Assembly: GCA_039096225.1 (NCBI GenBank)
Contig: JBBPEB010000009.1
Coordinates: forward strand, 1,302,001 to 1,366,000
Origin: Blastocystis sp. Blastoise
Lineage: Eukaryota; Protista; Bigyra: Opalinata
DNA: 64,000 nt
Reading direction: 5' to 3'
Below, one piece after another: positions 16,626 to 64,000 of the stretch (the first letter of the stretch is position 1; the number at the start of each line of letters is the position of its first letter). The notes beneath the pieces were generated by a model that worked only from the letters and a program-made list of their open reading frames with translations, was not told the DNA's origin and ran no database searches. The translations under genes and the position numbers were made by a program.

Positions 16626-19600
16626 CTACATGATTTTGATAATAGCAGTATATTCATTAATAATAATTTCATTAAAGATGTTAGTCATATTATTTATGAG
16701 ATTAATATTGGAGCCATTTCCAGTATTTCTAGTAACAACATTATGTTCAGTAATAAAATTATCATGATTTAAATGATCTCCTTGATGGTTTACTTCTTTA
16801 TCAATTAAAGATCCTATATATCGAGTTATAAGGAAAATAGAATCATCAAGAATAGGAATAACATGAAGATGTACATTTCGTTTTGTTATAATAGTTTTTA
16901 TCATGTTATATTGTTCATCAAAAAAAACTTTCTTTCTACCACAAAAACATTCATTCTTTAATTGACATGACTTATGTGACTTGCGATATTTAGTATTATA
17001 ATCTTGAATATATTCTACAGGAATACCATGTCCATAATAATAACCACATAACATGAGTAAATGATAACAATTGGGTAATTTATCAACGGATTTTAATGCT
17101 TCTACTAAACCACCAGTAACATATTTACATTGACATGATGCACAAAACCCATTTCCAACTTCTGTGAAACTCTTCTTTATTGAATCTTCTGTTTCATTAA
17201 TTATATTAGGAAGAGACATACCTTGTGATGAAACACATGTATTATCATCAACATTACTATATACAACAATTTGATATTGAACTACTGATTTATTTCTATC
17301 ATGCACTTCCAATCTTCTAGAATCTAGTTTTTCTAATATTGAATGAAACATTTTAGCCATGTTATCATGTACTTGATGAATAAAACCACTCCCATCCATA
17401 ACAATAGATAATACAAATGTTACAGGACGATTAATCTTACGACGTTCCCAAGGTTGAGGAATATTATCTTGTTCTGTAAATTGATTCATAACAACTTTAG
17501 TATATAAATCAGGTACAATGTTATCATCTAAATTACCTCCAGCAGCAATATGAAGTTCATTCAAATATCCTTCAATATTTAGTAACCAAATACATGCATT
17601 ACTTATCCATCTAGCTGTACCATCTTCTGACCAATCTCCAAATAATTTACTAGCTGCAGTATCTACAATCATACGACCTTTCATACCTTCATTATCTTTT
17701 AACATAATAGCAGGATTTCCAGAACTATCTTTAGCAAAAACAATAAAGCCTTTTTCTTCAAGTTTCTTTTGATCAATACCAGATAAAGTATAACCTTCAA
17801 AGAATATATTTAAACCTTGATTTATTTTCATCTTAAATTCTTTTTTAAATATTGATGTTCCATAAGGTAAAAACTCACTATTATTAAGTACAATAGGTTT
17901 ATTCTTTTCTTCTTTTGTAATTATATGCTTATGTATGATTTTACCTCCTGGTATATTTGCTGAAGGATCACAAACATTTTGAATATTATAACCATCATCA
18001 TCTTTATAAGCAAAGAATCTTTCAGCTTCAAAATCATTAGGATAATTTTCTAATAACCAGAAAATACCACCACCATGATTATGAAATACATATAAACATT
18101 TAATAAATGCATCAAGACGATCGACTTCTGTTGATTCTTCAGGTAAAATACCATCTCCAGGACTACAAGTAATTACAGCAACTCTATGTTTTCCTTGACG
18201 TAATTCATTAATTGCACTTTGATAACTATATACAATCTTATAATTAAATCCTTTTTGATCATGTAATTTCTGTATTGGACCTTTTAATAAACTGTTTTCA
18301 TTTACTTCAATATCTATAAGTTCTCCCTTTTCATTATATGAACCAGGTCTATGTAAATATAAGATGATAAATAATATAGACCAAGGTGTAAATGCTCCAT
18401 CTTTACCTAAATCATAAGAAGAATTCGAATTATTAAATAAATTCTTATAAGCACCATCTTCTGTTTCTTCTACATTTATAAAACGATTACGTCTTTCATA
18501 TATACTATCCATTTTTATAATCTCTTCAATAATCTTATTATTAAACTTGACATTAAATTTTGTTTCAGATATATTACGATATATATCTGGGTTTGTAATA
18601 TAAACTGATTGACTTTCTGTAGAATTTGTTGGTTGATATATATTATCAATAGCATTCGATAATTTATGAATATCTTGAGACCAAATAAAAGTAGGGAAAA
18701 TATCATTAAAATCAGTAATAGTATATCCAATACCTATACCAATATAAGTACATTCATTAGACATAATAATATTCTTAATTTCTTTTTGTTGATTACTACA
18801 AGGAATACTATCTGTAAATACAAAGAATATACTTGCATAAGGTCTACTATTACTTATAGCTGTAGCTTGTCGAATTGTCTCAGAAAGACAAGATATATTT
18901 GATGAATTTTGAATATTTAAGAAGAATGCTGTTAGTGTGGATTCTGTCCATATATCATAAGTTTGTAAACCTGTTCCAATACATATAGATTTATCACCAT
19001 TTGAAATCCATATATCAACAGATGAAACAAATAATTCTGCTAAACATCGAATAAATAATAGAATTGTTTCAACTGAATGGCGAATATTTAATAAATTAAA
19101 TGAAGATGATTTACAATCTATAATAACAGAAACAGTATATGCACGAATCTTACCACCTGATTTCTTTTTAAATAACTTACCATTACCAGTTTTAGTTAAA
19201 AGGAATTGAATATAATTCTTTAAATGAATAGAAGTACCTGTTGTTGAAGCAATCCAAGCAGTAGCTTTATTTTCTATAATAACATTAGCACTTAATGGTT
19301 CATAAATCATATTCTTAGAAATTATTTCACTTAATTCATTAAGAAGTTCTTTACTTCCTCCAGATGGTGTCTTTTGAAGCATAGAATCATCAATAGAAGG
19401 TAATGAACACTGACCACCAGATCTATTTGCATGAACTACTATATATTCTTTTTGTTCTACATTATCAAGTTTAGACAATGATTTATTATTATCTTTATTA
19501 TTCTTTTCTTCTTGTATAGGTAGATATAATATATCAGTGAGTGACAATGAGTCTGAAGATAAAATACTCTTTTCTATATCATATACTTTAGAAGAAAGAG

Positions 19601-22600
19601 AAATATCAGATAATTTATTAGAACTATAGAATATATTCCACCATTTACATATATTCTGTATACATATACTATCTATAGAATCAATAGTAATATAGTTATT
19701 ATCGAAATTTCTTTTAATTAATTTGAATAAAAGATCATTAGATGTATGTGTTAATGTTTCAGAAGATGATTCATTAGTAATTCCACTTTGAATTAAAAAT
19801 AAGAATAATTTATCTTTATTATCATGTATAAATTGATGTAAATGTTCAGAGATTAATTGTTCAGAAAAACCATCAGATATAATAATAAACTTTTCAGTAT
19901 CAAGTTTCTTTCTTATATCATCAAATCCAAATATATCAAAAGGTGCAGAAGGAGTTTTAATAATATTATCATCATCAAGATCATAAATTATAGATAATAA
20001 TTCATATAAATTATTTGTTTCTTTTGGAATATACATAAAACCTTGACCTCTTCCACATGTAGAATAAAGAGATATCTGAACATTTAACATATAACTAAGA
20101 ATAACAAGAATACTAGTAGCAATAGTTCTCAATCTTCTTTTTTGGGATTTAATTGTAAAATTAATATCAATAATAATATTAATATGTTCTATAATTTGAC
20201 AATCACGTTTTTCTGATTGACGGAAAAGATTATATACTTTTGAGACATATCCTTTATAATTATTTAAAATAAAATTAATAAAATGAGAATCAATTAAACA
20301 TTTTTGATTTTGTACTTTCTTAATACCATTTCTAGTATTATTTGTTTTGATCACACATTGTTCTATATGTTTTGAATTTTCTACTATTGCATTAAATATA
20401 ATATCAAGACTTTTACCATTATATTGTTCTAATAATACAGCAGAACTTTGTTCTAAGAATTCATATTTTATTTCTTCTTCTTCTTGTTCTTCTTGATTTC
20501 TTTTGTTTTTATTCATTTTATATAAAGAATCATCAAATTGAATTTCCATATGACTTCCTTCTTCTTCTTTTTTCTTGATTTCACCTAATTTTGTAAGAGC
20601 GAAATCACTGTTATAATCTCTCATGCAAAATGATTTATTATCAGATGTAGATTCGTTTTCTTTATGTATAGCTTCTTTTGATATATAATTACTACAAGGT
20701 CTTGTAATAATAACAGGCTTTACTGCATTCTTTACACCTTCTACTTGATTTTCCCAATTCATATGATTTGATAATAAACTATTTAATATATTTAATGATT
20801 TCTCAGCAACTGAACGAATACATTTAAAATATTGATCAGAATGATGTTTTATATAAAGTAATGATGAATATAATCTATTAAATTTTTCATAATTTTCAGG
20901 ATGATTATTAATATCTAATATACAATAAGGTATTTTTTGAATTGCTGATATATAATGAAGTATATCAACATTAGATAAATCTTTAATAGAATATGTTAAG
21001 TTATCACCATCAAATAATAAATCTTTATAAATAGAATCAATAGTAACAAAAGGACTTGGAAGTATTATATTATTTTCTACAGTAGGTTCTTTAAAATAAG
21101 ATATTTTATTTTTATTGTCTTTATCTTTAATAATAATGAAATCATGATGAGTAGCTTCATAATTATTCTCATAATCAATTACATAATCTGTATATCGAAT
21201 TTTCTCATATTCAACATTACCTTGCTTATAATTAATAGTTTTCTTATTCTTTACTATATTTAATTCTCTACTAATTGTATAAAACATAAATTGATTATCA
21301 TCATTTTCTTGAGGTAATCCAGAAGGTTCATTTGTTCTGAAATATTGACTTGATTGATCATTCTCACATGTACATCGTATATTGGTATCTGTTTTAAGTA
21401 TTTTATAATTATCTTTTAATTCATAATATATTCTAAATTGTAATTGTATGTCAATTATAGTATTAGGTTTATTAGTATTATTATCATCTTCATTATCACT
21501 TATTCTTATATCTAATTTAATACCATTATCTACATAATTTATAATACAGGAAGTAGATCGTACTTCATAATGATATCCATCAGGATTAAATATAGGTATA
21601 AACATATTATTAGTATGATATGTATTATAATGTTTAGGTAAATGAATAATATATTCATTTTGTTCTGTTGGACATATTAATTGTGGTATAGATTTAGAAT
21701 CTGAAAGAATATAAATATAATTATTTAAATTAATTGCTTTATTATTATTAAAAACACTATAATCTTCTGATTGTGGAGTTAATTGACTTACAGGAATATA
21801 TATACATTTAGAGATACTTCTTTCTAATAAGAAATTATCACGTTCAGTATATTTATGTATATTATCAACAAGTTCATTTATTGTATTCGAATTTATTTGA
21901 TATTCATCACATGTACCATTAATAGATCTTATTACAGATTGAATCTTTTTATCTTTAAGAGGATAGGGTAAAGTTTCACGAATAAAATATTTTGGAAGAA
22001 TTGTAAATGTATCACTGAAATAATAATCTTCTTCTTTTAATAATTTATATTTATTCATAATTTTAAACTTTAAAGGGAATATTATTGGCTTTTTAATCAT
22101 ATCTATATTATCAAGTGTTATAGTAAAAGAAGAAGCATTATTTGTTTCAAGAAAATGAGGTAAAATAAATGTTTGTTTACTTAATTGATATTCATATCGA
22201 TCTTTAATAATTCCTTTCTGATTATATAAGTATAATTTATAAGAATTTATAGGTATACAATAAAATTCAGGAGTTGTTCGTTCATAAATAGGTATAGATT
22301 GAATTTGGTTGAATGTAGATATATTAAAATTTGTATCAAGAATAAATGATAATTTATTATCTTTGAAAAACTGATACATTTGATCAAATACATAATTACT
22401 TAATAACATATATTCATCATTCATATTTACATCATTCATATTTTTATGATTCATTTCAGCAGGTAAACTAAAGTAATATGTATTTGTATCCACTTCAGAA
22501 GGTATATCTTGTAAAACCATTGTATATATTGACATAGGGCAAAAAATATATTCTATAATTTTGTTTTCTTTTATTCTCTTGTTATTATCCTTTTGAAATT

Positions 22601-25600
22601 TTAATTTATTATTATAGATAGAAATAGGTGCTATTTCATTGGATGATGTCATTAATTGCATAGTTATCATAATAGATTTCATTGTAATAGGATATTTTAA
22701 TTCAATAATTTGAATATATTCTTTATTCTTCGGTAGAATCTGACTAAAATATTCTCTATCAAATATTGTGAATTTATTTTGAATAGTATTAAATAATGGA
22801 TTAGTTTCATCTATTGTATATGATTGTTTTACACATTTAGAATTAAAAAATGTATTCCAAGAATAATAATATAATTGTATCATATACCAATTATAATTGT
22901 TCATTTCAGTTTGTATAGTATCTTGATTAGAATAATAATAAGTATTATTTGTATTATTTTCATTATTAATAAGTTGTTTAAATGTGATTACAGATTTTTC
23001 ATATTCTTCCTTTAGTATATTATTTTTTTCTATTATTTTTTCTTTTTGTAAATTAATATCTTTTATTTGTTTTAGAAGTATTTTATGTTCAGAATCAATA
23101 TCATTATTAAATATTTTATTAAATAATTCTGTAAAAGATGAAGAATCACTTATTGCTTCCTCCATTCCTTGAATCCATCGATCATTTAATAATAATTCTT
23201 GAATTAAATTAGAATAAAGAGTAAAAGAATAAGGGAATAATAATTCATATTTAGAAGAACTGTTCAATTTAGAATTCTTTATTAGTGTCTCATAATCATT
23301 TAAGATACGTTTATAGCTATTTAACATATTATAACATAAATCAAGAGAATGAGAAGATATCATTTGATTGGGAGCAAGATACGACAAATTATCATTAGGT
23401 TTATTACATGGATGAGCTTCTATTTCATATATATCATCTTTTTGGAAACAGGATAGGCATCCTATATAATCATCAGTTAAATAATTACTATAACGATTCA
23501 CTAATGCTTCATAAATACAAGCAAAGAAACTAAAAGTATTTAAATAGCAGAAAGGTTTTTTCTTATTAAGAATAGTATTATTATTATAAACACAAGAAAG
23601 CATGCTTTCTAATGAAGTATTTTCATCAAAATATACTTTAAGTTGACCAAAATATCCATGATTTGAACATATAAACAAAGCTTTCTGTAATTTCTTGTCA
23701 CTTATATCTCTATGAACATAGAAATTAGATGATTTCAAAATAGATAGTATTTCACGATTAAAACTAAGCCCATTTTTTGATAGACTACAGTATTGATTCA
23801 TACAATAATTGACTATATATATAATATATTTAATATCTTTTTGTAGTAAAGATTTATCTACAAACAAGTACTTTATATCCATTTCAATAAGTTTTAATGC
23901 TTCAATATTATTAAAGAATAAATTAGTAATATCAATAGATGGATTCATAGTCATACATACAAATTGTGATAGATATTCATATTGTTTCCAATAAACATTA
24001 TCCATTTTCAATGAATCAAATTTCTTATATTGAATAAAATGATTTTCATTTGAAAGAGATTCTAAATCAATATTATCCATAGAATTCTTATTATTTGTAT
24101 ACATTTGTTTAATAGCATCTTGTATATTTTCATTACATGACTTAATGTTATTCGATATATATAAAGGAAGATAGATACCATCTATAGCAGTAAAATAATA
24201 ATAAGTTTCAATTCTTCTCTGTTCTAATTTATGTATAAATGTTGTTAAATCTTTTGTAGATATATTATGATCCATTATATTCACATATTCATTATGTATA
24301 GTATTATATAAGTCATTTATAGAAGTATATAAAGTTTTTGCTTTTGAATGGTCAAGTTGTATTTGCTTATATTTTTCAGAGAAATCGTGAGCAGATAAAC
24401 TAATAGATTCATAATCCTTTAATAATTGTAAAAGATAATCTGAAGATATAGTATTTATATTTTTTTCTAATTCAGTATAAATATTTTTTATATCAGTATC
24501 TTCTATAGAATCATAGAAAAATAACATTTTATCTAATATATAACATAATATAAATCGTTGAGAGATTGTTTCTACTTTAAAATAATCACATGGATTATTC
24601 TCTTCTACGAATGCATTATTTTCATCTGTAATTGAAATATTATTATTAGCTTCAAAGAATTGATTTGAGAATAATTTCCATCTATTAATACTAATGATCT
24701 GAGAAAATGAATTCTGCCCAATTACACCATCTATATTATTATGTATAGATAATATTTCCATTATTTTAGAAAGAGGATAATAAAGAACACTCTTTAACCA
24801 ATAATAAAGATATTTCTCCATTTTTTTATATCGATCATTTTGATAGAAACTTTGAATATTACGTTGTAAACATACATATATTTGATTACGAAGATTACTC
24901 TGTTTCTCTATTGTAATATTACGATTATATAGTAAATCAATAAAATCATCTTCAAAAACAGTATTTTGATTATTATCTTTTGATCGCTTTCTATTTGTTA
25001 TATTTATATTATTTTCAAATTCTGTGTTTAAAAGTTTATGAATATCTTCTTGAGAATTTAATATACGTACAGCTTTTCTCCAATGAATCATATTTATAAT
25101 ATTATTAGATAGAATAGATGGCTCTGGAATATAATTACCAAATGGATTATCAAAAAATACTTTTGAATCACATAATTCACATATTTGTTTAAGACTTGAT
25201 AAAGGTTCAGTATATAAAATAATACATCTACTTTGTAAAGGAGCAGCAATAGAAGAAATATTATTACTTGACATAGTTAAAATTAATCTAAAGTCTTCAT
25301 GTATATATTTATATCCTAGTTTCTTTTCACGAGAATAATAATAATTTTCTTTTCCTTCATTTATAGCTAAAGTAGGATTTTCTTCACATAAAGGATTAAT
25401 TCGTTCTAATATATCATTCTTTGCTTGTTCAATACCTTCAAGATTTAAGAAATAACCTTTTTCCATAGCTTCTAATAAAGGACCTTTTTTAAATACTAAT
25501 TGATCTTGATTTGTTTGTTGAGAATTATCTAAATTTGAAGATACTTTATTTAAATTTGAATTAGGTTCTAATCGACCTATTAATAAAGATGAATTACTTT

Positions 25601-28600
25601 CAGCATTTATAGGTACATTAAGAATAGTTTGATTTAATAATTTAGCAAAAGTACATACAGTATGTGTTTTACCAGAAGGAGAAGAACCATAAATTAAAAT
25701 AACACGTCTAGAAGAATATGAAGAAACTAATTGATATAATAATAATTTTTCAGAAGAAGTTAATAATAATGAATTATTATTAAATCCAGGAGTATATATA
25801 GAAATAGGGAAACTACTTGTTAATGTTAATTTATAAGAATTATTTTCAGTTTGATGACAATTAATATCAACTCTATCTTCTTTATTAGAAGTATCTATAC
25901 CTAATGAGTTTTTAAGTTTATCTCTTTCTATAGGTGGATAACGATATGCTATAGATAAAAGTAAAGAAGCTTCTAAAGATAATATAGATGATGAAAAAAT
26001 ATCTCTAGTTTTTAAAATATCTCTTAATGAAAATGGAATACCATTTTGTTTTCCTAATTCAATAGCACATGAAACTATATTTTGTATAATTTTCTCAGCA
26101 TTATTCTTAGCTATTGGAGTACCAAACGATTTTGATATTTTTTCTTTAACTGATTCATTATATTGATAATTAATAATAAGATTACTACTTAATTTAGTTA
26201 ATTCAAATATATTAAAATCTAAATCTTTATAATAATAACCTAATTTTAATAATGATTTTGGTAATGTACCACGACTACTTGATAATGTAGGTGGATTCTG
26301 AGAAATAACAATAATAATATGAGGTAAATGATCTATTTGTTTATATCCAGGAATATAAAATTTCTCATTATTACAACTTTTATATATAAGATCAGTAATA
26401 GTATCTAATAATTCTGGAGAAGCAAGATTTAATTCATCTAATAATAAACCTATAGTATATCCATTTTTTCTAAATGAATATTGATTCTTTGTTAATCTAG
26501 TTGGAGTCTTTTCATTATTATTAAAAGTATAATAATAATTTGAATACAATGATTTTTGGAAATCTTTGTTTTCTATTAAAGTATTAGTATTCTTATTATA
26601 TATATTTAGCATATCTATATTTTGAGATAATAAATAAGTTAATTCTGATTGTTCAAAAGTAGCTGTATTATTAGAGAATTCATTATGATTATCTTTATCT
26701 GCTTTAGATTTAATACTTTGAATACCAAAAACATTTCCTAATTCTGTATTTTGAGCAAAATTTATTCGAACAAAAGGAATTTCTAAATAATTAAAGAAAC
26801 GAACAACTAAATCTGATTTTCCAATTCCTGGTGCTCCTTCTAATATAAGTGGATAATGATTAATTTTTTCATTTTGAGTATTATATTGATTGTTATTATT
26901 AATAGTAATAGTTGAAATATCAGAACTCATAATTAAAGATGTAAAAATATGTAATGAAGTTAGTGTTTCATGAAGTGGCATATTTATTTGTTTTTGTTTT
27001 TGTATTATTGAAGAATATATACTTGATATACATTGATGAAATAATGAACCTAAAGCTTCTATAGTATTAAATGAATCTAAATTTGTTGGATACAAGAAAT
27101 AATTCTTAAGTTGATTAATTTGTTCTTGATTTTCAGTGGAATTTAATAATTGTTGTCTTTGATTTTTATCAGAAGAAATATATTTTAAATAAAAAGAAGC
27201 ATCTTTATATCCATTTTGAAAATAGGGTGATAGATTCTTAACTTTATATAAGAAAGATAATGGTTCTTTATAATATTCTTCATCAAATCCATTTACAATA
27301 TTTTTCTTTGCTTCAGAAGTATAATCATTACAAGATATATACATAAAATAATTCTTTAAAGGAGTTTTTCCATATACATCTTCATCAATAGTAGCAATAA
27401 ACCGTTTATTTCCAAGATTAAATTCAGGATTCTGTTCACTTTCATGAAGAATAAAAGGTATATTATTATATGTACTTTCTAAAAGAGATTCCATTCTAGG
27501 TAATACATTTTCACTTAATAAATCCATATGATTAAAACGAACTATTTTATTTGAAAATAAACCAACTATAATTTGACCAGGTTTAAATATCATTTGTGTT
27601 GATGTTGTTTCTTTAGATTTATTGTCCATTGTATGAAGCCATTTTGTATATGATTCGTTAGTATTATTAGTTAAGTTATTATTATTCATATCTACTTGAT
27701 TATCAACACTTGATTTAATATTTAAAATAGTATTGTGTATTTCAGTCTGATTAGCAATTGTATTATATCCAATTAAATAATCATTATCTAATGATCTTGA
27801 TAATTCTATTTTATATGTACTTAAATCTCCACAAATATTACTTATAAATGTATCTATAGATTCATGACCACCAATAAGTAATGGAGGAATAGGAGTTATT
27901 CTTTGTACTAATAAAATACGAAGAATTGAAGAATAACACCATTCTAAATTATCTAAAGAAATATTCTCTACATAAAAACTTAATATAGTATTATGTAAAC
28001 TTTTTGTTTCTTTATCATAAGAACAAGGTAAATGAATAAGTGTATGAATAGATTGTATTTTCTCATTTATTAAAGTAGCTAACTCATCTTCTGATATATT
28101 TTTTGTATCTTCTTCACGAATAGTATATGATGCTATATTATGTAGAAATGGAGAATTTATTTGTAGATATGAATCAGGTTGATATAAACAGACAATATAA
28201 GCCATATAAAATGAAGGATCAGATGTAAATATTTGTTTATTATCGGCTTTATTATTTACTATATACTCATAAATCTTATTAAAAATTACTAGTTGATTGA
28301 TAGGTATAGAATCATAGATATATAATGATTGTAAAACATTATTTGATAGTAATTTTGCTAATTCTTTCTTTGTATATGTAGGTATACTAACTTGATTAAT
28401 ATAAGTTGGTAATGTAAATTTAATTTTATCATTTTGATTAGATCTAAATACATAAATTACTCTAAATGTATCAGAAATCGTATATTTATCATTAATATAT
28501 AATACTTCATTTGATAAAGGATCTATAAACTGTTGAATAGATTCTAATAATTCTTCAGATAAATATTGAGCATTTTCAAATATAATAATATATCCATTTT

Positions 28601-31600
28601 TAAGAGCTTCAATTAATGGACCATCTTTATGACTATTTTCAGTATTATTACCTATAGAAGCAATAGTATAACTTCCAACTAATTGTGTAATATCTGTATC
28701 AGGAGTTAAATAAATAGTTTTAACATGATTCAAAGAACATCTATTTAATAATCTATGTAGTATATATGATTTTCCAGAATTACTCTTTCCAATAAGAGCA
28801 GTTGTTCTATTTTCACATAAACTTCTAAAAAGGCTTGTATAATATTTTTGACGAAGGATTGGTTTTCCATTAGCAGTTGTAAAAAGAGATAATTGTTTAT
28901 TGTCTATATAATCTTTTATTAATTGTGAGAATCCATCAGAAGTCTGTGTGTCTTCAATATCACACATTTGATCAATAAATCGTAAAGAATCATGTAATTT
29001 CTTTTTAGAAAAGAAATCATTTTGCTTCTGTATAGTTCTTTCAATATATTTATATATTTCTAATGTATCGTCTTTCTCATTATTTATAATATCTGAAAAG
29101 TATCGAAGATCTTTTAGAGGAGCTGATTTGATCTCCTTTGATATATTCTTTATAAGAGTATTAGGTATATAAATATGTGTAAATCGATTATTTAATGCAG
29201 GAGAAAATTTTTCTAATGATTTATAAGCACTTGTAGCAATTATTCTAAATTGAGGATTGACTTCAATATCACTATTTTCTTGTCTTTCATCAAAACGAAC
29301 ATCTTTAGTTGATAGTGTCATATCTTTAGAATTATTATTTCTACGAAATTCAATTTCTAATAAATTATTTAATCTTTCTAAAGAAATACTATTCATAAGA
29401 TCTATATTTTGTAATACATTTATATATCCTTTAATAGCACTATGAACAAGAGTAGAATCATTCCAAATAGGAATAAGTTGTTTATGATCTTCAGAAGGTC
29501 CAAGAGTAGAAGCACCAATTAAAGTCTCACTAGTAATTGCTTTAGAACAATATGTAGTACTATATCCAACACCAAAATCACCAGATCTTATAGATATTAA
29601 ATCTGTTTTTTGTTTGTTTAACTTATATCTATGATATAAGAATGCATAAACATATTTTCTTGCTGTATATTCATCATCAGCACATACGAGAACATGAGAT
29701 CCTGAACTTAATGCAACATTCAATAAATCATCTATATAAAAATATACTAAAGGATCTAAGGGAACAATAGGATAATCACATAATTCTTTATGTTTATTAT
29801 AGGCAGATTCTTTTAATGTAAATAATGTATTCAGTGATTGTTTTTTATTATATACTAATGCATTAATATATTCATTACATCTTGAATCATCATGATATCC
29901 ATAATAAATAGATATAGCTCTATTAATATCTCTTATTGTATAAAGTTTATTTACTAATCTTTTAGGATCAGCATTTACTGCTGATATATGACTAGTATTT
30001 AAAAGTTTATTAAACTCTGTAGTTAATCTCTTCTTTAGAATAAATGATTCAATTTCTGAAGGAGATATAGGAGGAAATAACTTCTCATTTAACACTCTAA
30101 AATAATCTTTAATATCTGTATTTAATGTATTTCGTTTATATACAGAACCAGCAGGATTTTGTGTAGCTATAATACGGAAATAAGGATTCATTTCTCTTAT
30201 TTCATATTGTCCAAGTTGATCAATAAAGATTTGTTTAGAATCTAAGAAAGATAAGATTGATTGAACAATAGATTGAGGAGCTAAAGACATTTCATCTAAT
30301 AATAATATACCACCATGAATAAATGCTTCTGTGAATGCACCAGATTTAAATATAAAAGTACTTCCATTCTTATTAGTTTTTAATGCAATATCACCAATTA
30401 AATCTTCAGGAGAAGACGTAGGAGAGAAATTATAACGAATAATACGAATACCTCCTATTTTACATATATATTCTACACTATAAGTTTTACCACTTGATGT
30501 AGGTCCTTCAATTAATAATGGAATATTATATTGAATAGCTGTTTTAACTTGATTAATTCTTTTAATAGAATCTTCAGTTTCTATATAATCATTCATAAAA
30601 GAAGATGGTTTAAATGAATAATAAGGATAAATAATATATTCCTTTCCACGAATAACATATTTCAATGATGAATTATTTGAATGAACAATCATATAATCAC
30701 CAGTACATTTATATAAATATGGTTTTTTAGATCCATTTTCAGAAGAAAAAAGTAATATATTATCATTTTTATAACTAATTTTTTCAGTTACTTTTGTATC
30801 TATATTTAGACTCTTTATAGAAGGATGAATAATACAATAGAAATATATAGTTTTTGACATAAAATTATATTTTGCTTCTTTTCTTTCTGTTTCAATTAAG
30901 GGTAACGTAAAGAATACTTTTCTATCATTGATTATAGTTGAGAAATGGAAATATTGATCTTTAGAAATAGAAGATAATCCATTATACAGAGCAATAGGAA
31001 GAGATAGAAATGAAGACTCATTTTCAAGATTCTTATAAGTTTTATTTGTATATAAAGTAAGATTTTCGAATGTTTGGAAATAAGATGTCTTAGAAGATTC
31101 GTTATATATATAATAACATGGTTCTAAAGGAGAATAACCACATGGACTAGGATGATTTTCTAAAGTAGAAGCATAAGAAGAAGGATCTGCTTTTTCTATA
31201 TTTTGTGTATTACCTATATAATTAATATATATATGTATATATGTATGATAAGAATACAAAGGATTATATATAAAGAATATAAACATAAAATAATTCTTAT
31301 AATTTTTTACCTGAATCATATTCTTTAATAAAGAACTCATCGTCATATTGAGAGATATGTTTTAGTGGATTATTATTTACCTATATATATATATATCATA
31401 AATACTTATCTATTAGTAGCAAAGACTTATTTATAATAAAACAAATATATATATAGGTTTATATATACATATATAATATCATGTTTGTATTTATCATTTG
31501 TTGTTATGGAATTAATAAATACATAAGCCATATAATAATTATATAAATAAGTTTCTTTTTCTGTTAACTGATGTTGAAATGAAAAAGATATTTGAAAAAG

Positions 31601-34419: not shown

Positions 34420-34496
<77 letters not shown>

Positions 34497-45180: not shown

Positions 45181-48154
<2,974 letters not shown>

Positions 48155-51075: not shown

Positions 51076-51148
51076 GCCCGTCTAGCTCAGTCGGTAGAGC
51101 GCCAGGCTCTTAACCTGGTGGTCGGGGGTTCGAGCCCCCCGGTGGGCG
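51076..51148 (+). tRNA. tRNA-Lys (anticodon CTT)
   Basis: GCCCGTC-TAGCTCAGTCGGTAGAGC, anticodon arm CCAGG-CTCTTAA-CCTGG, T arm GGGGG-TTCGAGC-CCCCC, acceptor 3' strand GGTGGGC, downstream T-tract. Confidence 0.97.
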
Positions 51149-51413: not shown

Positions 51414-54400
51414 TTAAGATATACTCATATATCTTTCATAAGAATCTGTTATTATTTTTGCAAATAAATGAGCAAAATCTAAATCATCTTGTATATATGT
51501 TTTTATAAATTGTTTTGGTAATAAGGAATGTAATAAATCTGCTGTAAATTCAAATGCACTATTCTCGGATACTATTTCACTATCATTTATACAATTTATT
51601 GGTATCATATAAAATTCTACATCTATATTCTTTATTATTTCTATATGTTTATCCCATATATCATCCCAATTCTCATGTGTTTCAGGATTCTCATTTAATG
51701 TACATACTTCATATATACCATGATTTGGTTGATCACCTATTATTATACCTATATGCTTATAATTATTATACGGTTCTTTATTCATTCTTATATATGCTTG
51801 CTCTATTCCTCCTTCAACATCTTCACACATTCCAGCACAACATCCTGGCATAAAACCACCTCCTTCAATCTCTACTTTATCTATATATTCTTTTAATATC
51901 TCAAAATCATCTATTATCTCGGAACAAGAAAAATGTTCTATATAATCTGGCTCATAAAAATCTCGATAACCTATAAATTGACCTACTATCTTTGATTCTT
52001 CTTTTCCAAATTTCTCTCTTATTTTTATTAATAAATCTATTATTCGTAATATATGCTTCTTTACTTCATTATAAGGTGGATTCATTGAACCTGTACAATC
52101 CATTATTATCGATAAACAAAAATCACCTTTTGATGATACTATTGGCCTTTTCTTATCTAATACCTGAAATTCATTTATATCACATTCACTTAAATCTATT
52201 GTTTTGGGTATTTCTATATTTATTCTATCTAATCCTATATTCTTATCTATATTTAATAACCATATTATTGCATTTGATATCCATCTACTTGTTCCTTTCT
52301 CTGTAAATTCTATAAATAATTTAGATGCAGCTGTATCTATTATCATTCTTCCTTCTCTTTCATTACTATTTCGTAACATTATTGAAGCATGACCTTCATG
52401 TTCACGTGCAAATACTACAAAACCATTCTCTTTTAAGGCTTCTTCATCTATACTTGCTAATGTCTTTCCTTCATATATACTAAATAATCCTGTATCTATT
52501 TTTGTCTCTATCTTATTCTTAAATAAATCTTCACCTACTGATATAAAATGACCATAATTTATCGAATTCTCTCGTCTCTGAGGATCTCTTGTCATCTCTT
52601 TTGTACCCTCTATCATTGTTTTATCCGTTATATATTCAATATTATAAAAATTATGGAAATAAATATCAGCTTCATGATTAAAAGGATAATTTTCAAGAAA
52701 CCAAAAGACACCACCACCAACACTATGGAAATAATGTAACCAATTCAAAAATGCATCAAGATATGATGTATCAGGATTTATAGCCATTTCAGGTAAAGGA
52801 TTTCCTGTTTTAGAACAAGTTATACATACTACTTTATATATACCTGTTTTAATTTGTTCTATAGCATTATAATAATCATAAACAATCTTGACATTAAATC
52901 CTTTTTGATCTCTTAATTTCTTCATTGGACTTAACATTGTTTTACCATCTCGTTTTAATCCATTTATAAATACATCTTCAGTAATAAATTCATCAGGAAT
53001 TACTCCATCTTTTCCTACTTGAATATCACTTCTTCTTAAATGTAATATAACAAATAATATACTAAAATCTTTAAATGAATGATCTTTACCTAAATCATAT
53101 TCATTACCTTCTATATTAGCTTTCATACCTTTATTAACTTCATCTGTTGTACTATTTAAATTAAATAATTGAGCACGATATTCATAAATACCATAACAAT
53201 TTGATATTTGACCAATTAAATCACGATAATGAGGTATATTTTGTATATTATTATAATCAGAAGAAGATATACCTTTATAATTATCTAATATATTATTAAT
53301 TAAATTTTGTTTTGTTTCAATATTTATATTCATAATAGCATCTCGAATTCTTTTTGGATCTTTACTCCATAAGAAATTAGGATATATATCTTTATAATCT
53401 TGTAATATATATCCTATACCTATAGCTAATGTTTGAATACTATTATTATTTATATTATTCTTTATATCTTCTTTAGTATCTTGTATTATAGTTCCATTAG
53501 TAAATATAAATAATAAACCAGGATTACTTCTTGCCATTATAGTAGCATTTGCATATTTAATACCACTTGATAATACTGTTTCATTTTGAGGTAACATTAA
53601 TTCTAATAATATATTTGTTAATATAGAACCTGTCCATAAATCAGATGAAGGTATACCACAACATATTTTATGTATAGTATTATTACATATCCATATATCT
53701 ATTTCACTTATACTCATTTCACTTATAGCTCTTAATAATAACATAATTGTTAATATAGAATGTTCTCTATTTAATTCATTAAATCCAGAAATAGAACAAT
53801 CAATAATAAAAGATACAGAATAACTACGTATTTTATTACCTGTCTTCTTTTTAAATATTTTACCATCACCTATTTTTGTAACCATATATTTAATATAATT
53901 CGATATATGTAATGAAGTACCCGTTATACTTGGAACCCATGATGTTGGCTTATTTGGTGTTAATATACTACTATTTAAAGAATAAAATAATATATCACCT
54001 GGTATATTTTCATTTAAATCACGATATAAATCATTATTACCACCATTTATAGTATAACTTAAATCTCTATCTGTTAATATAGGTAATTCATTATTCCTAT
54101 ATATCATACCTAAACTATGACTAACTATAGTTAATAAATCTTTTTGATCTTCTTTACATTTTAATAATATACTCGTTAAGTCTTCTAAATAATTAATATT
54201 TATATTATTTATTCTTCTTATATAATCATATAAATATCTTCTTGGAACTTGAGTACTATCTATTTCTTTACCATTATCTATATCATTCTTAATCTTTTCA
54301 TATTCTTTATCATCTTCTTTTTTATTTTCTTCATTAATATTATTATTATTATTATCTTTATTATTATCTTGATAATTATCATATAAATAATACATACTAT

Positions 54401-56291
54401 TATTATCTGGACTTATATTCTCTTTTACTTCATTTGTATATATATGAATACATTTCTTAGTACTATAAAAATAACGAAGATAATTAGGTATTGTTATATT
54501 AATAATATCATTTATTGTTTTCATAAAAATAATATTTTTCTCAAAATTGGTTTCTAACATTTTCTTTTGATGTCCTAAATTAATATCGTTAATAGATTCT
54601 TCTTCTATTCCTTCTATATATAGGATTAATAAATGAGGATTAATAATATTTAATATTTCTTGAATAGAAGGAACAGGAGATAATAATTGTTCACTAAAAC
54701 AATCACTAATTAATATATATAATGATTCTTCATTAAGTATAATATCATCAGTATATTTAAATATATCTAAAGGAGTAGAAGGTGTTTTTGAAATATGTTC
54801 TAAATCAAATAATTTTATTATTTTTATACGTATATCTTCATCATAATCAGAAATAAAAAACCCTTGACCTCTAGATCCTGTACAAATTATTCGAATATTT
54901 ATATTTAATTCATTACATAAATAAATAAATAAACAACCTATAATTGTTCTTAAACGAGCTTTATTTTTCTTATGAGATAAATTAGTATCTATAATTAATG
55001 TAATATTAGAAATAAATTGATTTTCTTTAAGTTCACTATTCTTTAAAGCAATATATAAATATTGAATAATAGGAAGTAAAATTTGATATATATGGTAGAC
55101 ATCTTTATCAAATAAATGTTTATCTATTGTATTAATTGCATATCGAATCAATTTAGTATCTTTTGATGAAGGTTTTACATAAATATCTTCTTTAGAACGT
55201 TCAAATATTTGTTGAATATATTCATCTAAGGAAATACTATTAAAATGTTTTAATACATCTTTTACATCAACATTTGTTATTTCTTCTTTTATTTGATCTA
55301 TTTGATCTTGAACTTTTTTATTATCTACTTTCTTATTATTATCATCACCTTTTTTCTCCATTCCTTTTCGTTCATAATCAGGTACAAAACCCATATCTCC
55401 ATTATTAATTAATTGATTTGCAATAAAATCATTAAAATTCTGATTTGCATTAATAGCATTTAAGGGTTTTCCTTCTTGACGTTGTTCTTTAGGATCTTTT
55501 TCATCATCATCATCACTATCATATATATAAGCTATTCCATTATTATCTTCTTCTTGATTATTATTATTATTATTATTATCGTTATTATTATTATCGTTAT
55601 TATTATTATTATTATTATTATCATTATTTTTATTATTATTCTTATCTTTTTCATCTGAATGATTATAAACAAAATTATATTTACTTTGTTCAGGTTTATC
55701 ATCTTTATTAAATTGATTATTATCATTATTATCATTATCAAGTGGATCTTCTTGATCTAAAATATCAGCATTTACAAGTATATTATTCTCTTCTTTTTTA
55801 TCACGTTTCCAAAATAATTTTTTACCTTGATTAAATAAACCATATATATTATCTACAAATCGATTAATAGAATCAAAATAATCTATTTTATTCTTTTGAA
55901 TATAAAATAATGCTTTTATAAAGAATTTCTTTACTTCAACATTTTTATAACATATTAAATATGGAATATGTTTATATACAGCTATATATACTTCTAATTG
56001 ATGATATAAAAAGTTATCTTTTAATTGAGAGATATCTTTATTAAAATCACCTAAAATAATTTCATTAGCTTTATATATAGAATAATCATGAACTTTTAAT
56101 GTTTTTTGTCCAGTAATAGAAAACTTTGTAGTTTGTTGAATATTATCCGAAGGACGATCATTTGTAAAATAAACATAAAAGAATTCTAAGAACTTTTGTT
56201 GATCAAGTTTTGGTTGTTTTTCTAATAATTCTAATTCTTTAATAGATAATTCTTCAATTTTTTCTAAAGGTTGCTCATTAGCATCAGCTTG

Positions 56292-56363
<72 letters not shown>

Positions 56364-59300
56364 TTTTTCTTGAGCTTCTTTAACTCGTCTTTCAATTATT
56401 TCTTTTTGTTTCTTTTGTTTTCTTTCAATTTCTTTCTGTTTTGTTTTTATATTTTGTTTAATTACTTCTAATCGTTGATTCTCTTCTATAATTTGAATAT
56501 TTCTTTCAAAATGATATTCTTCATTATTATATTCAATTACAAGTGAATCACTATTACATATAAGCATATGTTTATCTTCAGAAACATAACAATTATTATT
56601 TGTTGATAATAAATCAATAGGTCTTATAATATTAAAGAAAAGTGTAAAAGAAGAATCATTTCCATTTACTTTTATATTTATAGGTCTTCTATATTCAGTC
56701 ATTTCTTCATATATACCTAATATATGTATTTGAATAGAATAAGGATTACATAATAATTCATAATATTCTGTATTAACACCTTCTATTGGTAAATCAGATG
56801 GATTAATCACAGGAATTGTAATTATAGGATTATCTAAACCTCTATAAAAAGGAGGTAAAACAAAAACATTATTTTGAGGATATATAATATCTCTATTTGA
56901 TTTTCCAAGTATAACAATACAATCCGTAATAACATAATTATTTTGAGGAACATTAAGTATAAACTTTTCTATATCAGGTATAAATATATGATCAGAAGCA
57001 TTCTTTATTTCATTTAATACATGATTTAAAGCAATTTCAGTATTCTTTATATCATTTTCAATTGTTTTTATATTCTCCATTGTGTTTTCTCGTTTCGTTA
57101 ATAAATCATTAAAACCATCAATAGCATTTCTTAACTGTTTATTTTCCCATGTATTACCTACATAAGAATAAGGTAAATATTCTTGGCTAGGATTATTATA
57201 TTGTTTTCTTTGTTTCCTTATTAATGATTCTCTAGTAATAGGCATCAATTGACTATTTTCATTAGCTTTACTCATCTTTGATTTCTTATCAAATTTTACA
57301 GGATAATTTCTTGGGAATTCAATTGTTTTTATAGAACCATTTAATGAAGATACAGGTAAAGGATAAGATTTTCTTTTTCTATCATCAGTTAGAGATGCCA
57401 ATTTGTAAGGTATAATAGAATAATTTGCATAATAAGCAGAACTATCATCAAGGAATAAATAAGTATTTATAAACGCATGACTTTTAATATCTGATTGTTG
57501 ACATTGATAATAATTTATAGCACGGTTATAAGGAGTACTATGAATTAATAATTGAGTAGATAATTCGTTATAATCCATTTTATCCTCTGTATTATATTTA
57601 ACACCATGAGCTTTACAAAAAAATATCATATTTTCTAATAAATATCTAGTAATAGAATCACGTATATCAGTATGTCCTTTATTCTCATAAATAGTCTCTA
57701 TTGATTGATGTATCTCACAATACATATACTTTATATTAACAATATTTTTCTTTGGTTCTACTATTATATCACATGAAGATAATGGTAATACAAATAAATA
57801 TACATTATTTTCACGATGATATCCCCTAAATACTATAGGATCATAACGTACATATTCTGAATTAGGAAATAATTCAACTTTAAAAGTATTTCTTGTGAAA
57901 CCAAGGTCAGAACCACGTAAATTCATCTGAAGATTAAAAGAAACACTGGTGTCACTATTCTTGGCATATAAATATGCCACTTTTAAATAATAGGGTGTTG
58001 TAGGATTTGGAGTTAAATAGTGTTCACAATTATCAGGATTTAAATAATCATTCATTTGCATAGATGCATTAGGTTCTAATCTATGTATATTGTATATTAT
58101 ACTAATAAAACGATTAATACTTTCATGATATAAAGCTGTTATATTCGATAATTGAATTGATCTTTCCTCATTCACATCAATATTTGTATGCTTTTTCAAT
58201 TGTTCTTTTTTATTATTTATATTATTATTATAATCATTGACAATGTCATCAGCCAATTGTTCAATTTGTTCATTATATATTGGTATAGTATCTTCATATT
58301 CTTTTAATTTCTTTTTCAATTCATTTAATTCTTCAGTTTTTTTCTTAGTTTCCATGGATAATTTTGATTCTTCTTTTTGTTTATAAGCATCAATAGTTGT
58401 ATCAACACATTTTAATAAATCCTCACATTTTGTTACTCTTTTTATTTTATATTTTAAATCAGGAATATCAACTAGATTGATAGCAAAATTAATAATATCT
58501 TTATAAATAGAAGTATTATTCTTTCTCATTAAAGGACAAATTAATACTAATTTTTGGACATAATCTAGATTTGAATCCCAAATAAATTGATCTAATTCAG
58601 AAGGTTCCTTGGGTTCAAAGAATTTTAAATCAATTTTTATACAAAAAGAAGGATATATATGACCTCTTCTCATATCAACCATTTGTTTATCTTGTTTATT
58701 TAATAAACATAAATATTTTGTTTCTAATGAACGATAAGATTCACTATTAATAGATTGAATATATTGATATGCCTTGGATTGAAAAGGAATATTTCTATAT
58801 ATAAATATATTTTGTCCTCTGATTTTATCATAACCATTTCTAATCCAATTTTGATCACATTTATTACTTATAGATTTAAATTCAGTTTGATTTAATAATC
58901 CTACTTTTGATAATTCAGTGACACTCTCTAATAATGTTTCTTTAGTATATTCATTATGTATATATAAATCTTTATTTTGTATAATTTTAAATACATCTTT
59001 TGTTAAGTCAACTTTATCTGCAATTTGATTCATAAAATAATCTATATAGATTTTTAAAGATGAATAAAACATAGGAAATTGTTTTAAATTAAATAATATT
59101 AATCCTTTATCAATTTTTAATAAATCAAATAAAAAGAAATATTGAATAATAACACCTTCGGATGATGATTTTTCTTTAATAGATTTTTCAATATTAACAA
59201 TAAAATGAGAACATTCAATATATACACGAGTTTCTTTATTTTTAATACTATTATAATTAATAGTAGAACTTGATAAAAGATCAATATCTTTAAATTGATT

Positions 59301-62300
59301 ATATACATAATCACGATTTTGTTTATCATTAAAATAATTACGAAGTACACTGGCTACATCTGAATTAATACGACCAATTTGTTGTAATAAAGTATTCTGA
59401 TTATATATAATTTGTCTTTCATTCTTATCTTTTATATTTATATATTCTAAAGCATCTTCAAGGTTCTTTTTCTTTTCTTCTATTTGTTTATAATAATCAT
59501 CCTTATAGATATCATAAGATATATATTTGAATACTATATCATTCTCAATAACATCTCGATAATAACTAAGTGCCTTCGTAATAGAATTAATATTCTTTTG
59601 TAATTGTTGACTTGATATAGTATCATCAGTTTTATAATCTTTACTTTCATCAAAATACATACATAATAATGAAATAACTTCAAAGAAATGAACAATTCTC
59701 TTTATAATATCTGGTTTTTCTATATTTTTAAAGAAGTTAAAAACTTCATTAAATTGCATAAAATGTGTACCAATACGTGATAATGATAAGAATTCTCTTT
59801 CTCTTTTAATAATAAATGCTAAGGATGCTAAATATTCTAATGACAAATTTAGATCATTTAATGATAAATTATATGAATTATTATATAAATCTTTACAAAT
59901 TAATTCATATATATTATTATCAATAGATTTCTGATTATATCCATATCGATTGTTAATATAAGGAATAGTACTTTTAAGTGGCGAATTGATTAATTCTTTC
60001 TTTGTAGGTATTTCAAAAAAGTTATATAATTGCCATCTATAGAGTTCATTAAAATATAAAGTATCTTTATATAATACAGGTCTATTCTCTGTAGAACATT
60101 GAGTAATAATTTCATAAATTAAATGTAAAGGATAAACAATAATAGAATTTTTAAATAATGTTGATATTTGTTTTTCTATATTATTACATACTTGATTAGT
60201 AAAATTAGATACATGATCATTTAGTATTTTAGGCATACATTGTTTTAAAGAGCGAATACTATCTTCAATATTAGTATCACGTTCACTATTTGATAATATT
60301 TTCTGTAATATTCTTGCTGATTTATAATTGTCTTTAAAATGAGGAACTTTATCAGGATTCTTTTTAGGATAATAATTATATTCATTCATAAATGCTTCTA
60401 TTGTATCTAATTGAATTACACGCAAAGCTTTACGGAAATGTTTAGATTCTTCTATACCAAAATGAGTAGCTTTAATAATATCATTTTGATTATACAATTG
60501 ATATTTTACTATTTCTTGAACAGAAGAAACAGTTGCTAATGATTCACAAGATAAAATAATACATCTAGATAATAAAGGTGCAGGTATAGATGATATATTT
60601 GAAGAAGAAATAGTTAAAAATAAACGGAAATCAGGATGTATTTGTCGAATAGCTTTTGTTGTTGATATATTTTGTTTAAGAAAACAATTCATTTTATCTT
60701 CTTGTTCTTTATTATTCGATATATCTCTTTTATATATAGTAGGAGTATCAGATTCTAATAAAGTTAACATAGGATTATCTTGACATAAAGAATTTAATCT
60801 TTCTAAGATATCTCCTGAAACCATCTGAATATCTTCTAAAAATAACCATTTTCCATTTTCAATAGCATCAATTAAAGCACCATTTCTATATTTATAATCA
60901 GTAATAGATCCTTCATTCTCTATACTTTCATATCTACCTAATAATATACTAGTACTACTTTCTGTATTCATATGTATAGAAATAAATGGTTTATTTAATA
61001 TTTGAGCAAATTTCTTTAATGTATATGATTTACCTGAAGGTGAAGATCCATATAATATAATAGAACGAGAAGATTGATATGATAAACCTAATTTATAACA
61101 TAATATTGTTTCACTTGTAGTTAATTCTAATGAATCCATAATAAATGAATGATTATAAATATTATTAAATTTTATTTCCCAAGGACCTTTAAAAATACAT
61201 TGATTTTTTGTTTTATCACTTGAAATAGAAATAGTAAGTATATCTGACATTCCTATAGCTTTATTCATATCTTCTAAATACTCACCATTATATTTACAAC
61301 AAAATATAAGCCATAATGCAGAACGTATATCTAAAGATGAATTTAAACAAATATCAACAACTTTTAAAATATCACGTAAAGTAAATGGTATACGTGTTTG
61401 TTGAGATATTTGATAAGATGTATCTAATATATTCCATAATTGTTGTTGAAATTCAGTATTACCTAAAATAATACTATTTCTTTTCTTTGTTTCTTCATCT
61501 TCTTTTACTTTAATAACTTTACGATCATTTATTGAACTTAAATAATAACTACTTAATTGAATTAATTCTGTTTTAGAAAAATTAATACCTTTAAAATAAA
61601 TACATATAGAAATAAGATTAGAAGGTAATGTATTTCGATTAGCAGACATAGTAACAGGATTTAAGGTATTAATAATATATATTTCATTTAAATGAATATC
61701 ATCAGAACCTGGAATAGTAAATAATTTAGATTCGGATTGAATAGCACGAATTAATGTTGATATAGTATCTAATAAATCAGGAGATGCTAAATTTAATTCA
61801 TTAAAAATAAGTGCACTTGTTTTATAATCATTCTTTAAAAATGTAGTTAATGGTCCATCAATAAATTGTATACTTTGATTACTATTAAATTTATAACTAC
61901 CAAAAAGATCTTCAATAGTAATATTTTGTGCAAAATCTACAATATAATAAGGTATATTCATAGAATCAAACACTTTTAATGCATTTTCAGATTTACCTAT
62001 ACCTGGTGCTCCTTCTAATAATAATGGTATATGAGTAATAATAGATAAATAAATAGCTATAAATATATGAACAGTAGTAGGTACAGGATATATAATATGA
62101 TGTAAATTAGAAGAAGTAATATCATTATTTGAATTTAATAAATTAAAAAATTGTTCAACTATTTCTTTATGAAAACATTTTTGAATCGATAATTTATAAT
62201 TATTATATATATGTAATGGATCTTGTTGACTTTCTTTAAAGAAATCATTACAATAAGATGATTTCATTGGATAACAGAAATCAATTATATCTTGTGATGG

Positions 62301-64000
62301 TTTATATTTAATAGTATTATTCATAAATGAATTATATAATTGAACTCGTTCATATTCATCAGATATACAATATTCCATAAAAAATAATGCATCAGAAGAA
62401 TTATTAAAATATTGTATTAATTGATTTGTTATAGATAATAAAGAAAAAGAAGTTATTGAAGAAGGAAGTAATTTAAATAATGATTGTATTTCTTGTTCTG
62501 TAAATGGTTGACATAAAATAGAAATAAAATCATTTTTTAATGAAAAATTAAAATATTGATTACTATCTATAGTAGATATTAATAATGGAGGATTCTTTAA
62601 TGTATTATATAAACTATCTGTACAATCTTCATAAAATACATGCATTTGATCATAATGTAATAACATTTTTAATCTTGGGAATATAGAATCATTCATTAAA
62701 TCAATATTTTCTAAAAGAATAGGTCGATCTAAAAGAATACCTTTCGTAATACTGCCAGGATTAAATAATATAGATGATGATTTTTCATTATTAAATGTCG
62801 ATAATAATTGTTTTAGAGTATTTCCCCATAAAATTCTATTTCTTTCAGGTAATACAATAGAATGTTCTTTAGAATGAACAATATTATTATAAGTAATTTG
62901 TATTTCTGTTTCATTAGAAAGTGTTGTAAATCCAATTAAATGTGTTCCTTCTAAAGAACGAGATAATTCTATAGAATATATATCTGGATATATATATTGA
63001 ATAACTTTATTTTTATAATTTTCAGAACCTACTAATAATATAGGATATTCATATAATATCATTCCTATACGAAATAATGATTCATTTAACCATATATATG
63101 ATTCAATATCTTTATGATAATAAGGTATATATACTTCAAGAGATCCTTTTACTAAATGATAATATGATATATCATCAAAATCATCATATTGTTCTATAGA
63201 GAATAAAATAGCTTTATACATATGAATAGGAATAAAAGAAGATCGTTCCATAAATTCATTCTTAGAACAATGAATTATTTCTATATTAACAGGTGATGCT
63301 AATATTTCCATAATCATTGAATTTGGATAATGTTTAGATATATATTGTAATGTAGAAGGTTGAACTTGATATAAACATATAATAGAAAGAATAGATATAG
63401 GTATTTTAAATAATGATTGTATATGTTTAAATTTTATTAATGATGATAATGATATTTCAGGATAAGATAATAAATAATATAAATTTATACCATTATTATT
63501 CTTTTCTTTTTTAGATTTTTCATTATCTTTTTTATCATTATTATTATTATTATTATTTTCTTCTATATAATAATCATTATCCTTTGGATATAATGTATGA
63601 ATAATTTGATATTTTTCTTCTGGTGTATAAGGTGATAATACATAATGAATAATATAATTAGGAAATTGATGAGAAATAGATGTAACTTGACATGAATATA
63701 AAAATATCATTTTAAATTGTGGATGTATCTTATGTTCTACACCAGAAAATATAAATGTATCTTCAATAGGATTACAAAATAATTGAAATGATTGAAATAA
63801 ATCATTTGTTAAATATTCACTATGATCAATAACAACAATAAATCCAGATTCAATATATTTTAATAATAATCCATCATGATATATACCATCACTAGTATAA
63901 AAACCCATTAGTTGATTTAATTCTGTATCATTTGATAATGTTAATATCTTTATTTGGGGTATATGTAATATATTTACTAATGTATTTATTATATATGATT
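51414..64000 (-). CDS. Giant midasin-like AAA+/multi-VWA protein (paralogue B), 5' part beyond the window edge
   Basis: The frame stays open to base 64000 (..SYIINTL..LSNDTELNQLMG aligns with AAA3 of paralogue A). It shares LEGAPGIGKS, ELNLASP, FTLRDILK, YGSSPSGKS, DILERLN, GRGQGF/GSRGQGF, KTPSxP, GxGKxFKKK, YDLGKD, GGGxFWxLENYP, GRMIxDTAASKLF and GTxRWISNA with A, and ends in a VWA (MDCTGSM, GYRD, EDVEGG, GDQPNHG). Confidence 0.9.

Follow-up and report, generated by a model that had tools for sequence, protein, structure and literature searches.

Two giant genes of Blastocystis sp. Blastoise as members of an expanded midasin-related AAA+/VWA family separate from MDN1

A 64,000-nt stretch of the Blastocystis sp. 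Blastoise genome (C3:1302001-1366000, hereafter the window; genome 33.3 Mb, 34 contigs, ~22% GC) contains two giant genes, A and B, that encode AAA modules followed by von Willebrand factor A (VWA) domains. Blastocystis is the commonest genus of gut eukaryotes, and Blastoise is a tortoise isolate. Based on sequence comparisons, A and B are best read as single-chain AAA+/VWA remodellers of the MoxR clade, related to midasin (Rea1/MDN1) but forming a separate family. Midasin counts as a ribosome factor present in single copy and, to our knowledge, few single-chain six-AAA machines exist. A sister family that is multi-copy and fires in a different pattern would show that the midasin chassis has been reused for other work, and it yields predictions of which two Walker B sites carry activity, which VWA domain binds metal, and a cytoplasmic location.

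Both genes, described in the original prediction as co-oriented giants (A, 16626-36401; B, from 51414 to beyond 64000), are real. They lie on the minus strand. Gene A has a single open frame of 4,911 codons (31361 to 16626). The frame of gene B enters from beyond 64000 and stops at 51414; it has 4,958 codons in the genome, of which 4,194 fall within the window. Frames of this length at ~22% GC cannot arise by chance. Shadow open reading frames and a non-standard genetic code were also ruled out, since frames read in the standard code stay open for more than 4,000 codons and encode coherent domains. The architecture was correctly predicted to be collinear: A encodes six AAA modules, the window shows the end of AAA3 and AAA4-6 of B, and the order of the tail domains agrees. 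The start of B and its AAA1-2 are outside the window, with an AAA1 match located at C3:1367211-1367750. We rejected a recent tandem duplication, because A and B are only ~33% identical and each is closer to copies on other contigs. In public records the product of A is a hypothetical protein of Blastocystis sp. Blastoise, and the genome paper (PMC10690189) mentions neither AAA nor midasin, nor these genes.

The six AAA modules of A are of the AAA_5 type, as first proposed (Table 1). Among 12 Blastocystis proteins, AAA1 and AAA5 are the only modules that combine Walker A and Walker B with sensor 1 and sensor 2. In the same proteins, arginine fingers are found only in AAA2 and AAA6, which are the modules that complete the AAA1 and AAA5 sites. 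AAA2 and AAA4 lack Walker A, and AAA3 and AAA6 have Walker A alone. The motif pattern thus shows predicted complete ATP sites at AAA1 and AAA5 alone, each followed by a motif-dead module that supplies an arginine finger. Asn replaces the Walker B Asp of AAA5 both in B and in the paralogue closest to it. When 16 family and rotifer rings were compared with seven MDN1 rings, AAA1 and the AAA2 finger were kept in all 16, whereas AAA1 lacked Walker B in all seven MDN1 rings. Kipferlia, most parabasalid-type members and rotifers retain Walker A/B in AAA3 and the finger in AAA4, and both have been lost together in Blastocystis. This retention suggests that a ring of alternating firing and donor modules is probably ancestral.

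The tail was originally described as two VWA-like domains, an alpha/beta domain and a VWA domain. That order stands, as do the second VWA-like domain (V2), the alpha/beta domain, which resembles class-I GATase/GIFT domains, and the terminal VWA (V3). The first domain (V1) is only weakly VWA-like (E=6e-4 to the V2 profile for A). A structure model of the last 860 residues of B had a predicted local distance difference test (pLDDT) score of 87. Within it, V2 best matched the MIDAS (metal ion-dependent adhesion site) domain of Rea1, including its N-terminal loop (Z 18.0, root-mean-square deviation 2.8, 187 residues), and V2 also matched the MIDAS profile (96%, E 2e-9). V3 was closest to generic VWA domains, and the top Foldseek match of the tail was the NorD VWA. 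As modelled, the tail is shown to join a MIDAS domain of the midasin type to a domain of GATase/GIFT fold and a further VWA. The MIDAS motif is intact-looking in B V3, partial in V2 of both genes, and degenerate in A V3 and in V1. For the GATase-like domain, the closest folds are non-enzymatic GIFT-type domains. Class-I glutamine amidotransferase enzymes have a catalytic triad made up of a nucleophile-elbow Cys and His-x-Glu. Here a partly conserved Cys sits at the end of an earlier strand, where many homologues have another residue, and by eye the nucleophile elbow appears to lack a Cys. Pfam scans of V1 and the GATase-like domain returned zero matches, and the literature searched contains no report of a GATase/GIFT-like domain in a midasin-like protein.

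The best PDB sequence match is midasin (E 1e-50), which raises the possibility that one of them is the Blastocystis MDN1 orthologue. This has next to no chance of being correct. A canonical, intron-rich MDN1 lies at C34:166016-187233, where AAA1-6 of a fungal MDN1 ring align collinearly (42-61% identity) and, downstream of the ring, a plant MIDAS domain matches at 48% identity. In the best modules of A and B, identity to MDN1 is only 33-34%. The midasin lids PF17865 and PF17867 occur in this genome on C34 only, and a Pfam scan found no match to them, or to PF21108, in A or B. Therefore, the earlier statement that these genes are not MDN1 is upheld: the C34 gene is the better, collinear match and has both lids and a MIDAS domain. 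In a concatenated AAA tree, family and rotifer rings fell on a long, fully supported branch apart from fungal and plant MDN1; the tree was a quick one with long branches, without an outgroup and without Blastocystis or metamonad MDN1, and gives neither a root nor a direction of spread, be it ancient presence with losses or transfer between anaerobes.

Acidic and import features also separate the family from MDN1. No 60-aa window reaches 33% Asp plus Glu in A or B, while such content extends over hundreds of residues in three MDN1 proteins. The MIDAS domain of midasin carries a PY import signal (review, PMC6920918), which would correspond to the PY dipeptide of the MIDAS loop. This PY motif is present in 18/18 MDN1 sequences and in 2/48 family rows. 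It is improbable that the family consists of ribosome-related helpers, in the sense of duplicated midasins specialised in removing lineage-specific factors from the pre-ribosomes or hibernating ribosomes of anaerobes. V2 does retain the midasin-specific N-terminal loop, and AAA4-6 are collinear with MDN1. However, a canonical MDN1 is present, the lids, PY motif and acidic tether have been lost, the catalytic pattern is different, and 15 diverging copies would be unusual for a ribosome factor.

The tail of A and B matches ~20 loci in the genome, 15 of them in open frames of 4,429-5,515 codons. The proposal of an expanded family therefore holds, with at least 15 intact giant copies and one ring-less copy. 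The system also appears to be undescribed, as predicted: Pfam, PDB and literature searches found no characterised family of the same architecture, and no paper describing this family. A is closest to a clade of six copies (37-38% identity), whereas the nearest copy to B lies on C16 (42%). Identity to C25a, one of the six recent copies, runs at 79-94%, and these copies are mosaic along their length. Their ratios of nonsynonymous to synonymous substitution rates (dN/dS), obtained by simple counting that is biased upward in 22% GC DNA, are 0.4-0.5 in V1, V2 and the GATase-like domain, 0.9-1.5 in the linker, and near or above 1 in AAA3/4.

We consider it very improbable that the giant genes are selfish elements, stem from a virus, or are duplicates in decay, in each case with no host function. 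Intron-free exons of 14-16 kb in an intron-rich genome, dispersed copies, mosaicism and high dN/dS in parts would fit such an origin. Against it, frames of 4,400-5,500 codons stay open at 22% GC with 30-40% mutual identity, motif retention is patterned, 5' exons are predicted to be spliced, homologues occur in B. hominis and metamonads, and Pfam scans detected no transposase or viral domain.

Within the six-copy clade (L024-L033, L036-L037), identity switches by region (e.g., 78% in AAA4-5 and 99% in the late linker), which suggests recombination or gene conversion, and the Cys-rich loop of the terminal VWA varies between copies. Several other copies are altered. In the ring-less copy (G000:C26:440272-444525, minus strand; L034/L035), two deletions have removed all six AAA modules, along with most of the linker; a frame of 1,417 codons stays open, and the complete tail is 92-96% identical to its siblings in nucleotides. 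This copy could be an adaptor or a dominant-negative form. In a near-identical gene pair (C13:890401-891120, minus strand, and C13:833152-834072, plus strand; L022/L023; open frames of 1,580 and 2,995 codons), the GATase-like domain is followed by a helical C-terminus in place of the VWA. A 4,429-codon copy (L016; C3:837489-838415, plus strand) stops right past the GATase-like domain and has no terminal VWA. An extra AAA_5 match at C17:510528-510908 (plus strand) lies in a 2,113-codon frame without a tail match. Short frames at C21:28415-29041, C19:457968-458693 and C25:9659-10996 match the tail or terminal VWA only, being either fragments or VWA genes that stand alone. The 5,413-codon frame at C13:1020325-1036566 is matched in its second half only by a public 2,746-aa model (P0124), and this copy is thus probably split or truncated in the annotation.

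Upstream of its giant exon, A has an intron-rich 5' part. In the public 5,773-aa model, 22 small exons (36155 down to 31309) precede the 14.6-kb giant exon; 21 introns lie ahead of it, almost all of them bounded by clear GT-AG ends. An ATG exon at 36401 joins the exon holding the public start at 36155 in frame through a further GT-AG intron of ~59 nt, making the originally predicted start of A at 36401 plausible. The 5' part encodes a probable first ubiquitin-like domain, a Ser/Asn-rich stretch, and two repeats of a putative ubiquitin-like domain plus an alpha/beta unit. A profile of the N-termini of two paralogues matches exon-encoded A residues 352-619 (repeat 1; E=1e-8), and this exon type is found only immediately upstream of sister giant exons. 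These observations support the 5' exons and the giant exon forming one gene, with splicing predicted. The N-terminal units of A have a strand-strand-helix-strand order and weak similarity to PB1/UBX-type chains (Z ~3; pLDDT <50; Atlas 0.77-0.78), which is at most suggestive of a ubiquitin-like (beta-grasp) fold. Ubiquitin-like N-terminal units were seen in A and in the six-copy clade. A Pfam scan of the A N-terminus gave zero matches, and none of the metamonad N-termini tested matches the A unit.

These features bear on the possibility that the proteins are nucleotide-gated switches or scaffolds, in which a few live sites open and close the ring to expose or hide the tail, possibly with cis control by the N-terminal ubiquitin-like domains acting on the MIDAS. 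Having only two complete ATP sites, and perhaps one in B, would suit a switch, RNF213 provides a precedent (PMC7311170), the ubiquitin-like units of A and the six-copy clade are available for such control, and the ring-less C26 copy retains an open frame. We nonetheless regard this as rather unlikely. The site that is always kept, AAA1, is the main site in dynein, the ubiquitin-like fold is only weakly indicated (pLDDT <50; Atlas 0.77), and the unit is unmatched in the metamonad N-termini.

The family extends beyond this genome. A profile search with the GATase-like domain yielded 591 representatives. Six AAA modules with V2 and the GATase-like domain, usually followed by the last VWA, were found in B. 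hominis, Kipferlia bialata, Tritrichomonas musculus and T. foetus, and the same ring and tail architecture occurs in many metagenomic proteins of 4,000-6,500 aa. The parabasalid homologues mentioned in the original prediction thus exist, both in T. foetus (TRFO_17377, TRFO_27550 and TRFO_31156) and in T. musculus. T. foetus and B. hominis are culturable, which makes a search for clients feasible. Aduncisulcus paluster has a partial copy, and Dysnectes and Chilomastix have tail fragments. All named hosts of the ring-plus-tail form are anaerobic or microaerophilic protists.

In profile comparisons, Blastocystis modules are collinear with metamonad modules at 5/6 positions, and metamonad with rotifer modules at 6/6. 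Comparison with MDN1 gave in-register matches at AAA4-6 only, with odd modules pairing with odd and even with even. Bdelloid rotifers have a related ring gene followed by a VWA-rich gene, as well as a close GATase-like cluster. In Adineta steineri (L045:7474-32979), a six-AAA ring gene lies directly before a gene for a 4,425-aa protein with Ig-like and VWA domains, and the two are possibly one split giant gene. Neither V2 nor the GATase-like domain was found in the rotifer DNA examined. A 7,479-aa midasin-like rotifer gene has been mentioned in passing (PMC7943196). The GATase-like domain also occurs in other contexts, as seen in proteins P0135/P0281, P0205, P0254, P0242 and P0245: with a VWA in a stand-alone T. 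musculus protein, fused to EF-hands in metagenomic proteins, and in giant proteins that match neither the family ring nor V2, such as one of 3,906 aa in Monosiga brevicollis.

Midasin's MIDAS grips UBL domains and docks on the ring, and factors are released (PMC6920918). On balance, and with somewhat better than an even chance, we favour a reading in which the family applies this midasin/MoxR-VWA logic to other clients outside the nucleus, using a two-site ring and paralogue-specific VWA faces. As in Rea1 and NorQ/NorD, a VWA face would take hold of a client and the MIDAS-like domain would dock on the ring, which hydrolysis at its two sites would switch so as to pull the client off or release it. 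Loss of the PY import motif and acidic tether suggests action outside pre-60S assembly, probably in the cytoplasm. Which VWA retains its metal site varies between paralogues, so they probably act on different clients. Some observations weigh against this reading. Partial degeneracy of the MIDAS in V2, and in A V3, makes metal-dependent gripping uncertain for A. No effector domain (E3, nuclease or peptidase) was found, which weakens a role in defence, and the dN/dS ratios from simple counting are inflated at 22% GC.

MoxR/VWA pairs remodel clients, and MoxR-vWA modules also occur in conflict systems (PMC7159879). The likeliest reason for the expansion, judging from copy number, mosaicism and analogy only, would be the handling of foreign or damaged complexes (cell-autonomous defence), a tentative suggestion, also made in the original prediction, that falls short of an even chance. 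Quite unlikely is a more elaborate scenario: an old single-chain six-AAA lineage beside dynein, midasin and RNF213, with firing and donor modules in alternation and retained in anaerobic protists and bdelloids, that acts as a diversified cytoplasmic immune sensor-remodeller whose own ubiquitin-like domains shut the MIDAS until a foreign ligand binds the GATase-like/VWA head.

Between ring and tail, the long divergent middle noted earlier is present in both genes. The A linker has roughly 10-25 identities per 100 residues with distant paralogues, and a Pfam scan of the linker returned zero matches. An acidic/Asn tract had been claimed for both genes; it is clear in B (~55360-55780) but not in A, and is far shorter than the midasin Asp/Glu tether. 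Elsewhere in the window, an intron-free 326-aa open reading frame at 5427-6407 (plus strand) has a signal-peptide-like start and, by eye, the look of a papain-family cysteine protease. Between A and B, a low-complexity, Asn/Ser/Asp-rich frame of 651 codons (46199-48154, plus strand) is probably the last exon of another gene.

Table 1. Positions of the features of genes A and B and of tRNA genes in the window.
Feature	Position	Strand	Description
tRNA-Gly(TCC)	9702-9773	+	
A V3 (terminal VWA)	16629-17444	-	MIDAS degenerate; Cys-rich loop
A GATase/GIFT-like domain	17562-18464	-	alpha/beta; best conserved tail part; fold taken from B model
A V2	18612-19364	-	homologue of midasin MIDAS domain including N-terminal loop; MIDAS partly degenerate; PY import motif absent
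A V1	19602-20294	-	weak VWA likeness (E=6e-4 to V2 profile); MIDAS motif not intact
A linker	20295-25031	-	divergent, ~1,580 aa; short acidic patch near end
A AAA6	25032-25784	-	Walker A; degenerate Walker B; conserved arginine finger, predicted to serve AAA5
A AAA5	25872-26924	-	Walker A/B, sensor 1 and sensor 2 intact
A AAA4	27162-27944	-	no Walker A/B; arginine finger also lost
A AAA3	28242-28874	-	Walker A only; Walker B degenerate
A AAA2	29082-29759	-	no Walker A/B; conserved arginine finger, predicted to serve AAA1
A AAA1	29862-30599	-	Walker A/B and both sensors intact; has lost its own arginine finger
A giant exon	16626-31212	-	intron-free, ~4,860 codons, runs to stop; from open frame and public model
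A 5' part	31309-36401	-	intron-rich, ~23 small exons; mapped from public model P0001
tRNA-Lys(CTT)	51076-51148	+	265 nt beyond B stop, on opposite strand to B
B V3 (terminal VWA)	51414-52136	-	intact-looking MIDAS motif, then stop
B GATase/GIFT-like domain	52239-53126	-	IFT52-N Z 14.6; oligosaccharyltransferase subunit Z 14.4; ThuA-like Z 14.2
B V2	53319-53981	-	MIDAS homologue; DxSxS intact, last Asp to Asn; Rea1-MIDAS Z 18.0
B V1	54459-55031	-	weakly VWA-like
B linker	55032-60386	-	poly-Asn runs and Asn/Asp-rich tract
B AAA6	60387-61145	-	arginine finger
B AAA5	61233-62108	-	Walker A and sensors intact; Walker B Asp to Asn
B AAA4	62352-63095	-	no Walker A/B
B AAA3	63402-64000	-	C-terminal part

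Among known systems, midasin shares several features with A and B: six MoxR-clade AAA modules per chain, a long linker, a MIDAS-type VWA with the same N-terminal loop element, and AAA4-6 that are collinear by profile. In MDN1, however, the Walker A/B motifs are intact in AAA2-5 and degenerate in AAA1 and AAA6, whereas in A they are intact in AAA1 and AAA5 and degenerate in AAA2, AAA3, AAA4 and AAA6. The MIDAS of MDN1 is a single terminal domain, while V2 of A and B is followed by the GATase-like and VWA domains. Unlike MDN1, the family is multi-copy, has the extra V1, GATase-like and V3 domains and, in some copies, a ubiquitin-like N-terminus, and has no AAA_lid_5/7 match, Asp/Glu tether or PY motif. 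The rotifer giants resemble the family in ring motifs and in a module order collinear with that of metamonad members.

RNF213/mysterin is likewise a giant single chain with a six-AAA ring and only two catalytically complete sites, a likeness we treat as analogy only. Its live sites are AAA3 and AAA4, with a dead AAA1 and a terminal E3 module, and the main site of dynein is AAA1 (PMC7311170). The AAA1 and AAA5 pattern of A and B differs from that of RNF213; A and B have no Pfam match to a RING/RZ E3 module, and the tail models as VWA-GATase-like-VWA. The dynein heavy chain is similar in that AAA1 is the universally kept site. Matches to dynein tail, linker and stalk families are absent from A and B apart from sub-threshold P-loop cross-matches, and a VWA tail is found instead. 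MoxR AAA+/VWA pairs (NorQ/NorD, CbbQ/CbbO, RavA/ViaA and the MoxR-vWA ternary conflict systems) have the same AAA clade and a VWA partner, and MoxR-type AAA modules coupled to a VWA domain are likewise present in A and B. These pairs are prokaryotic homo-hexamers with a separate VWA gene, whereas A and B each place specialised modules in one eukaryotic chain. Finally, the GATase-like domain shares its fold with GIFT/class-I GATase-like domains, including the IFT52 N-terminus, an oligosaccharyltransferase subunit and ThuA-like proteins (Z 14.2-14.6).
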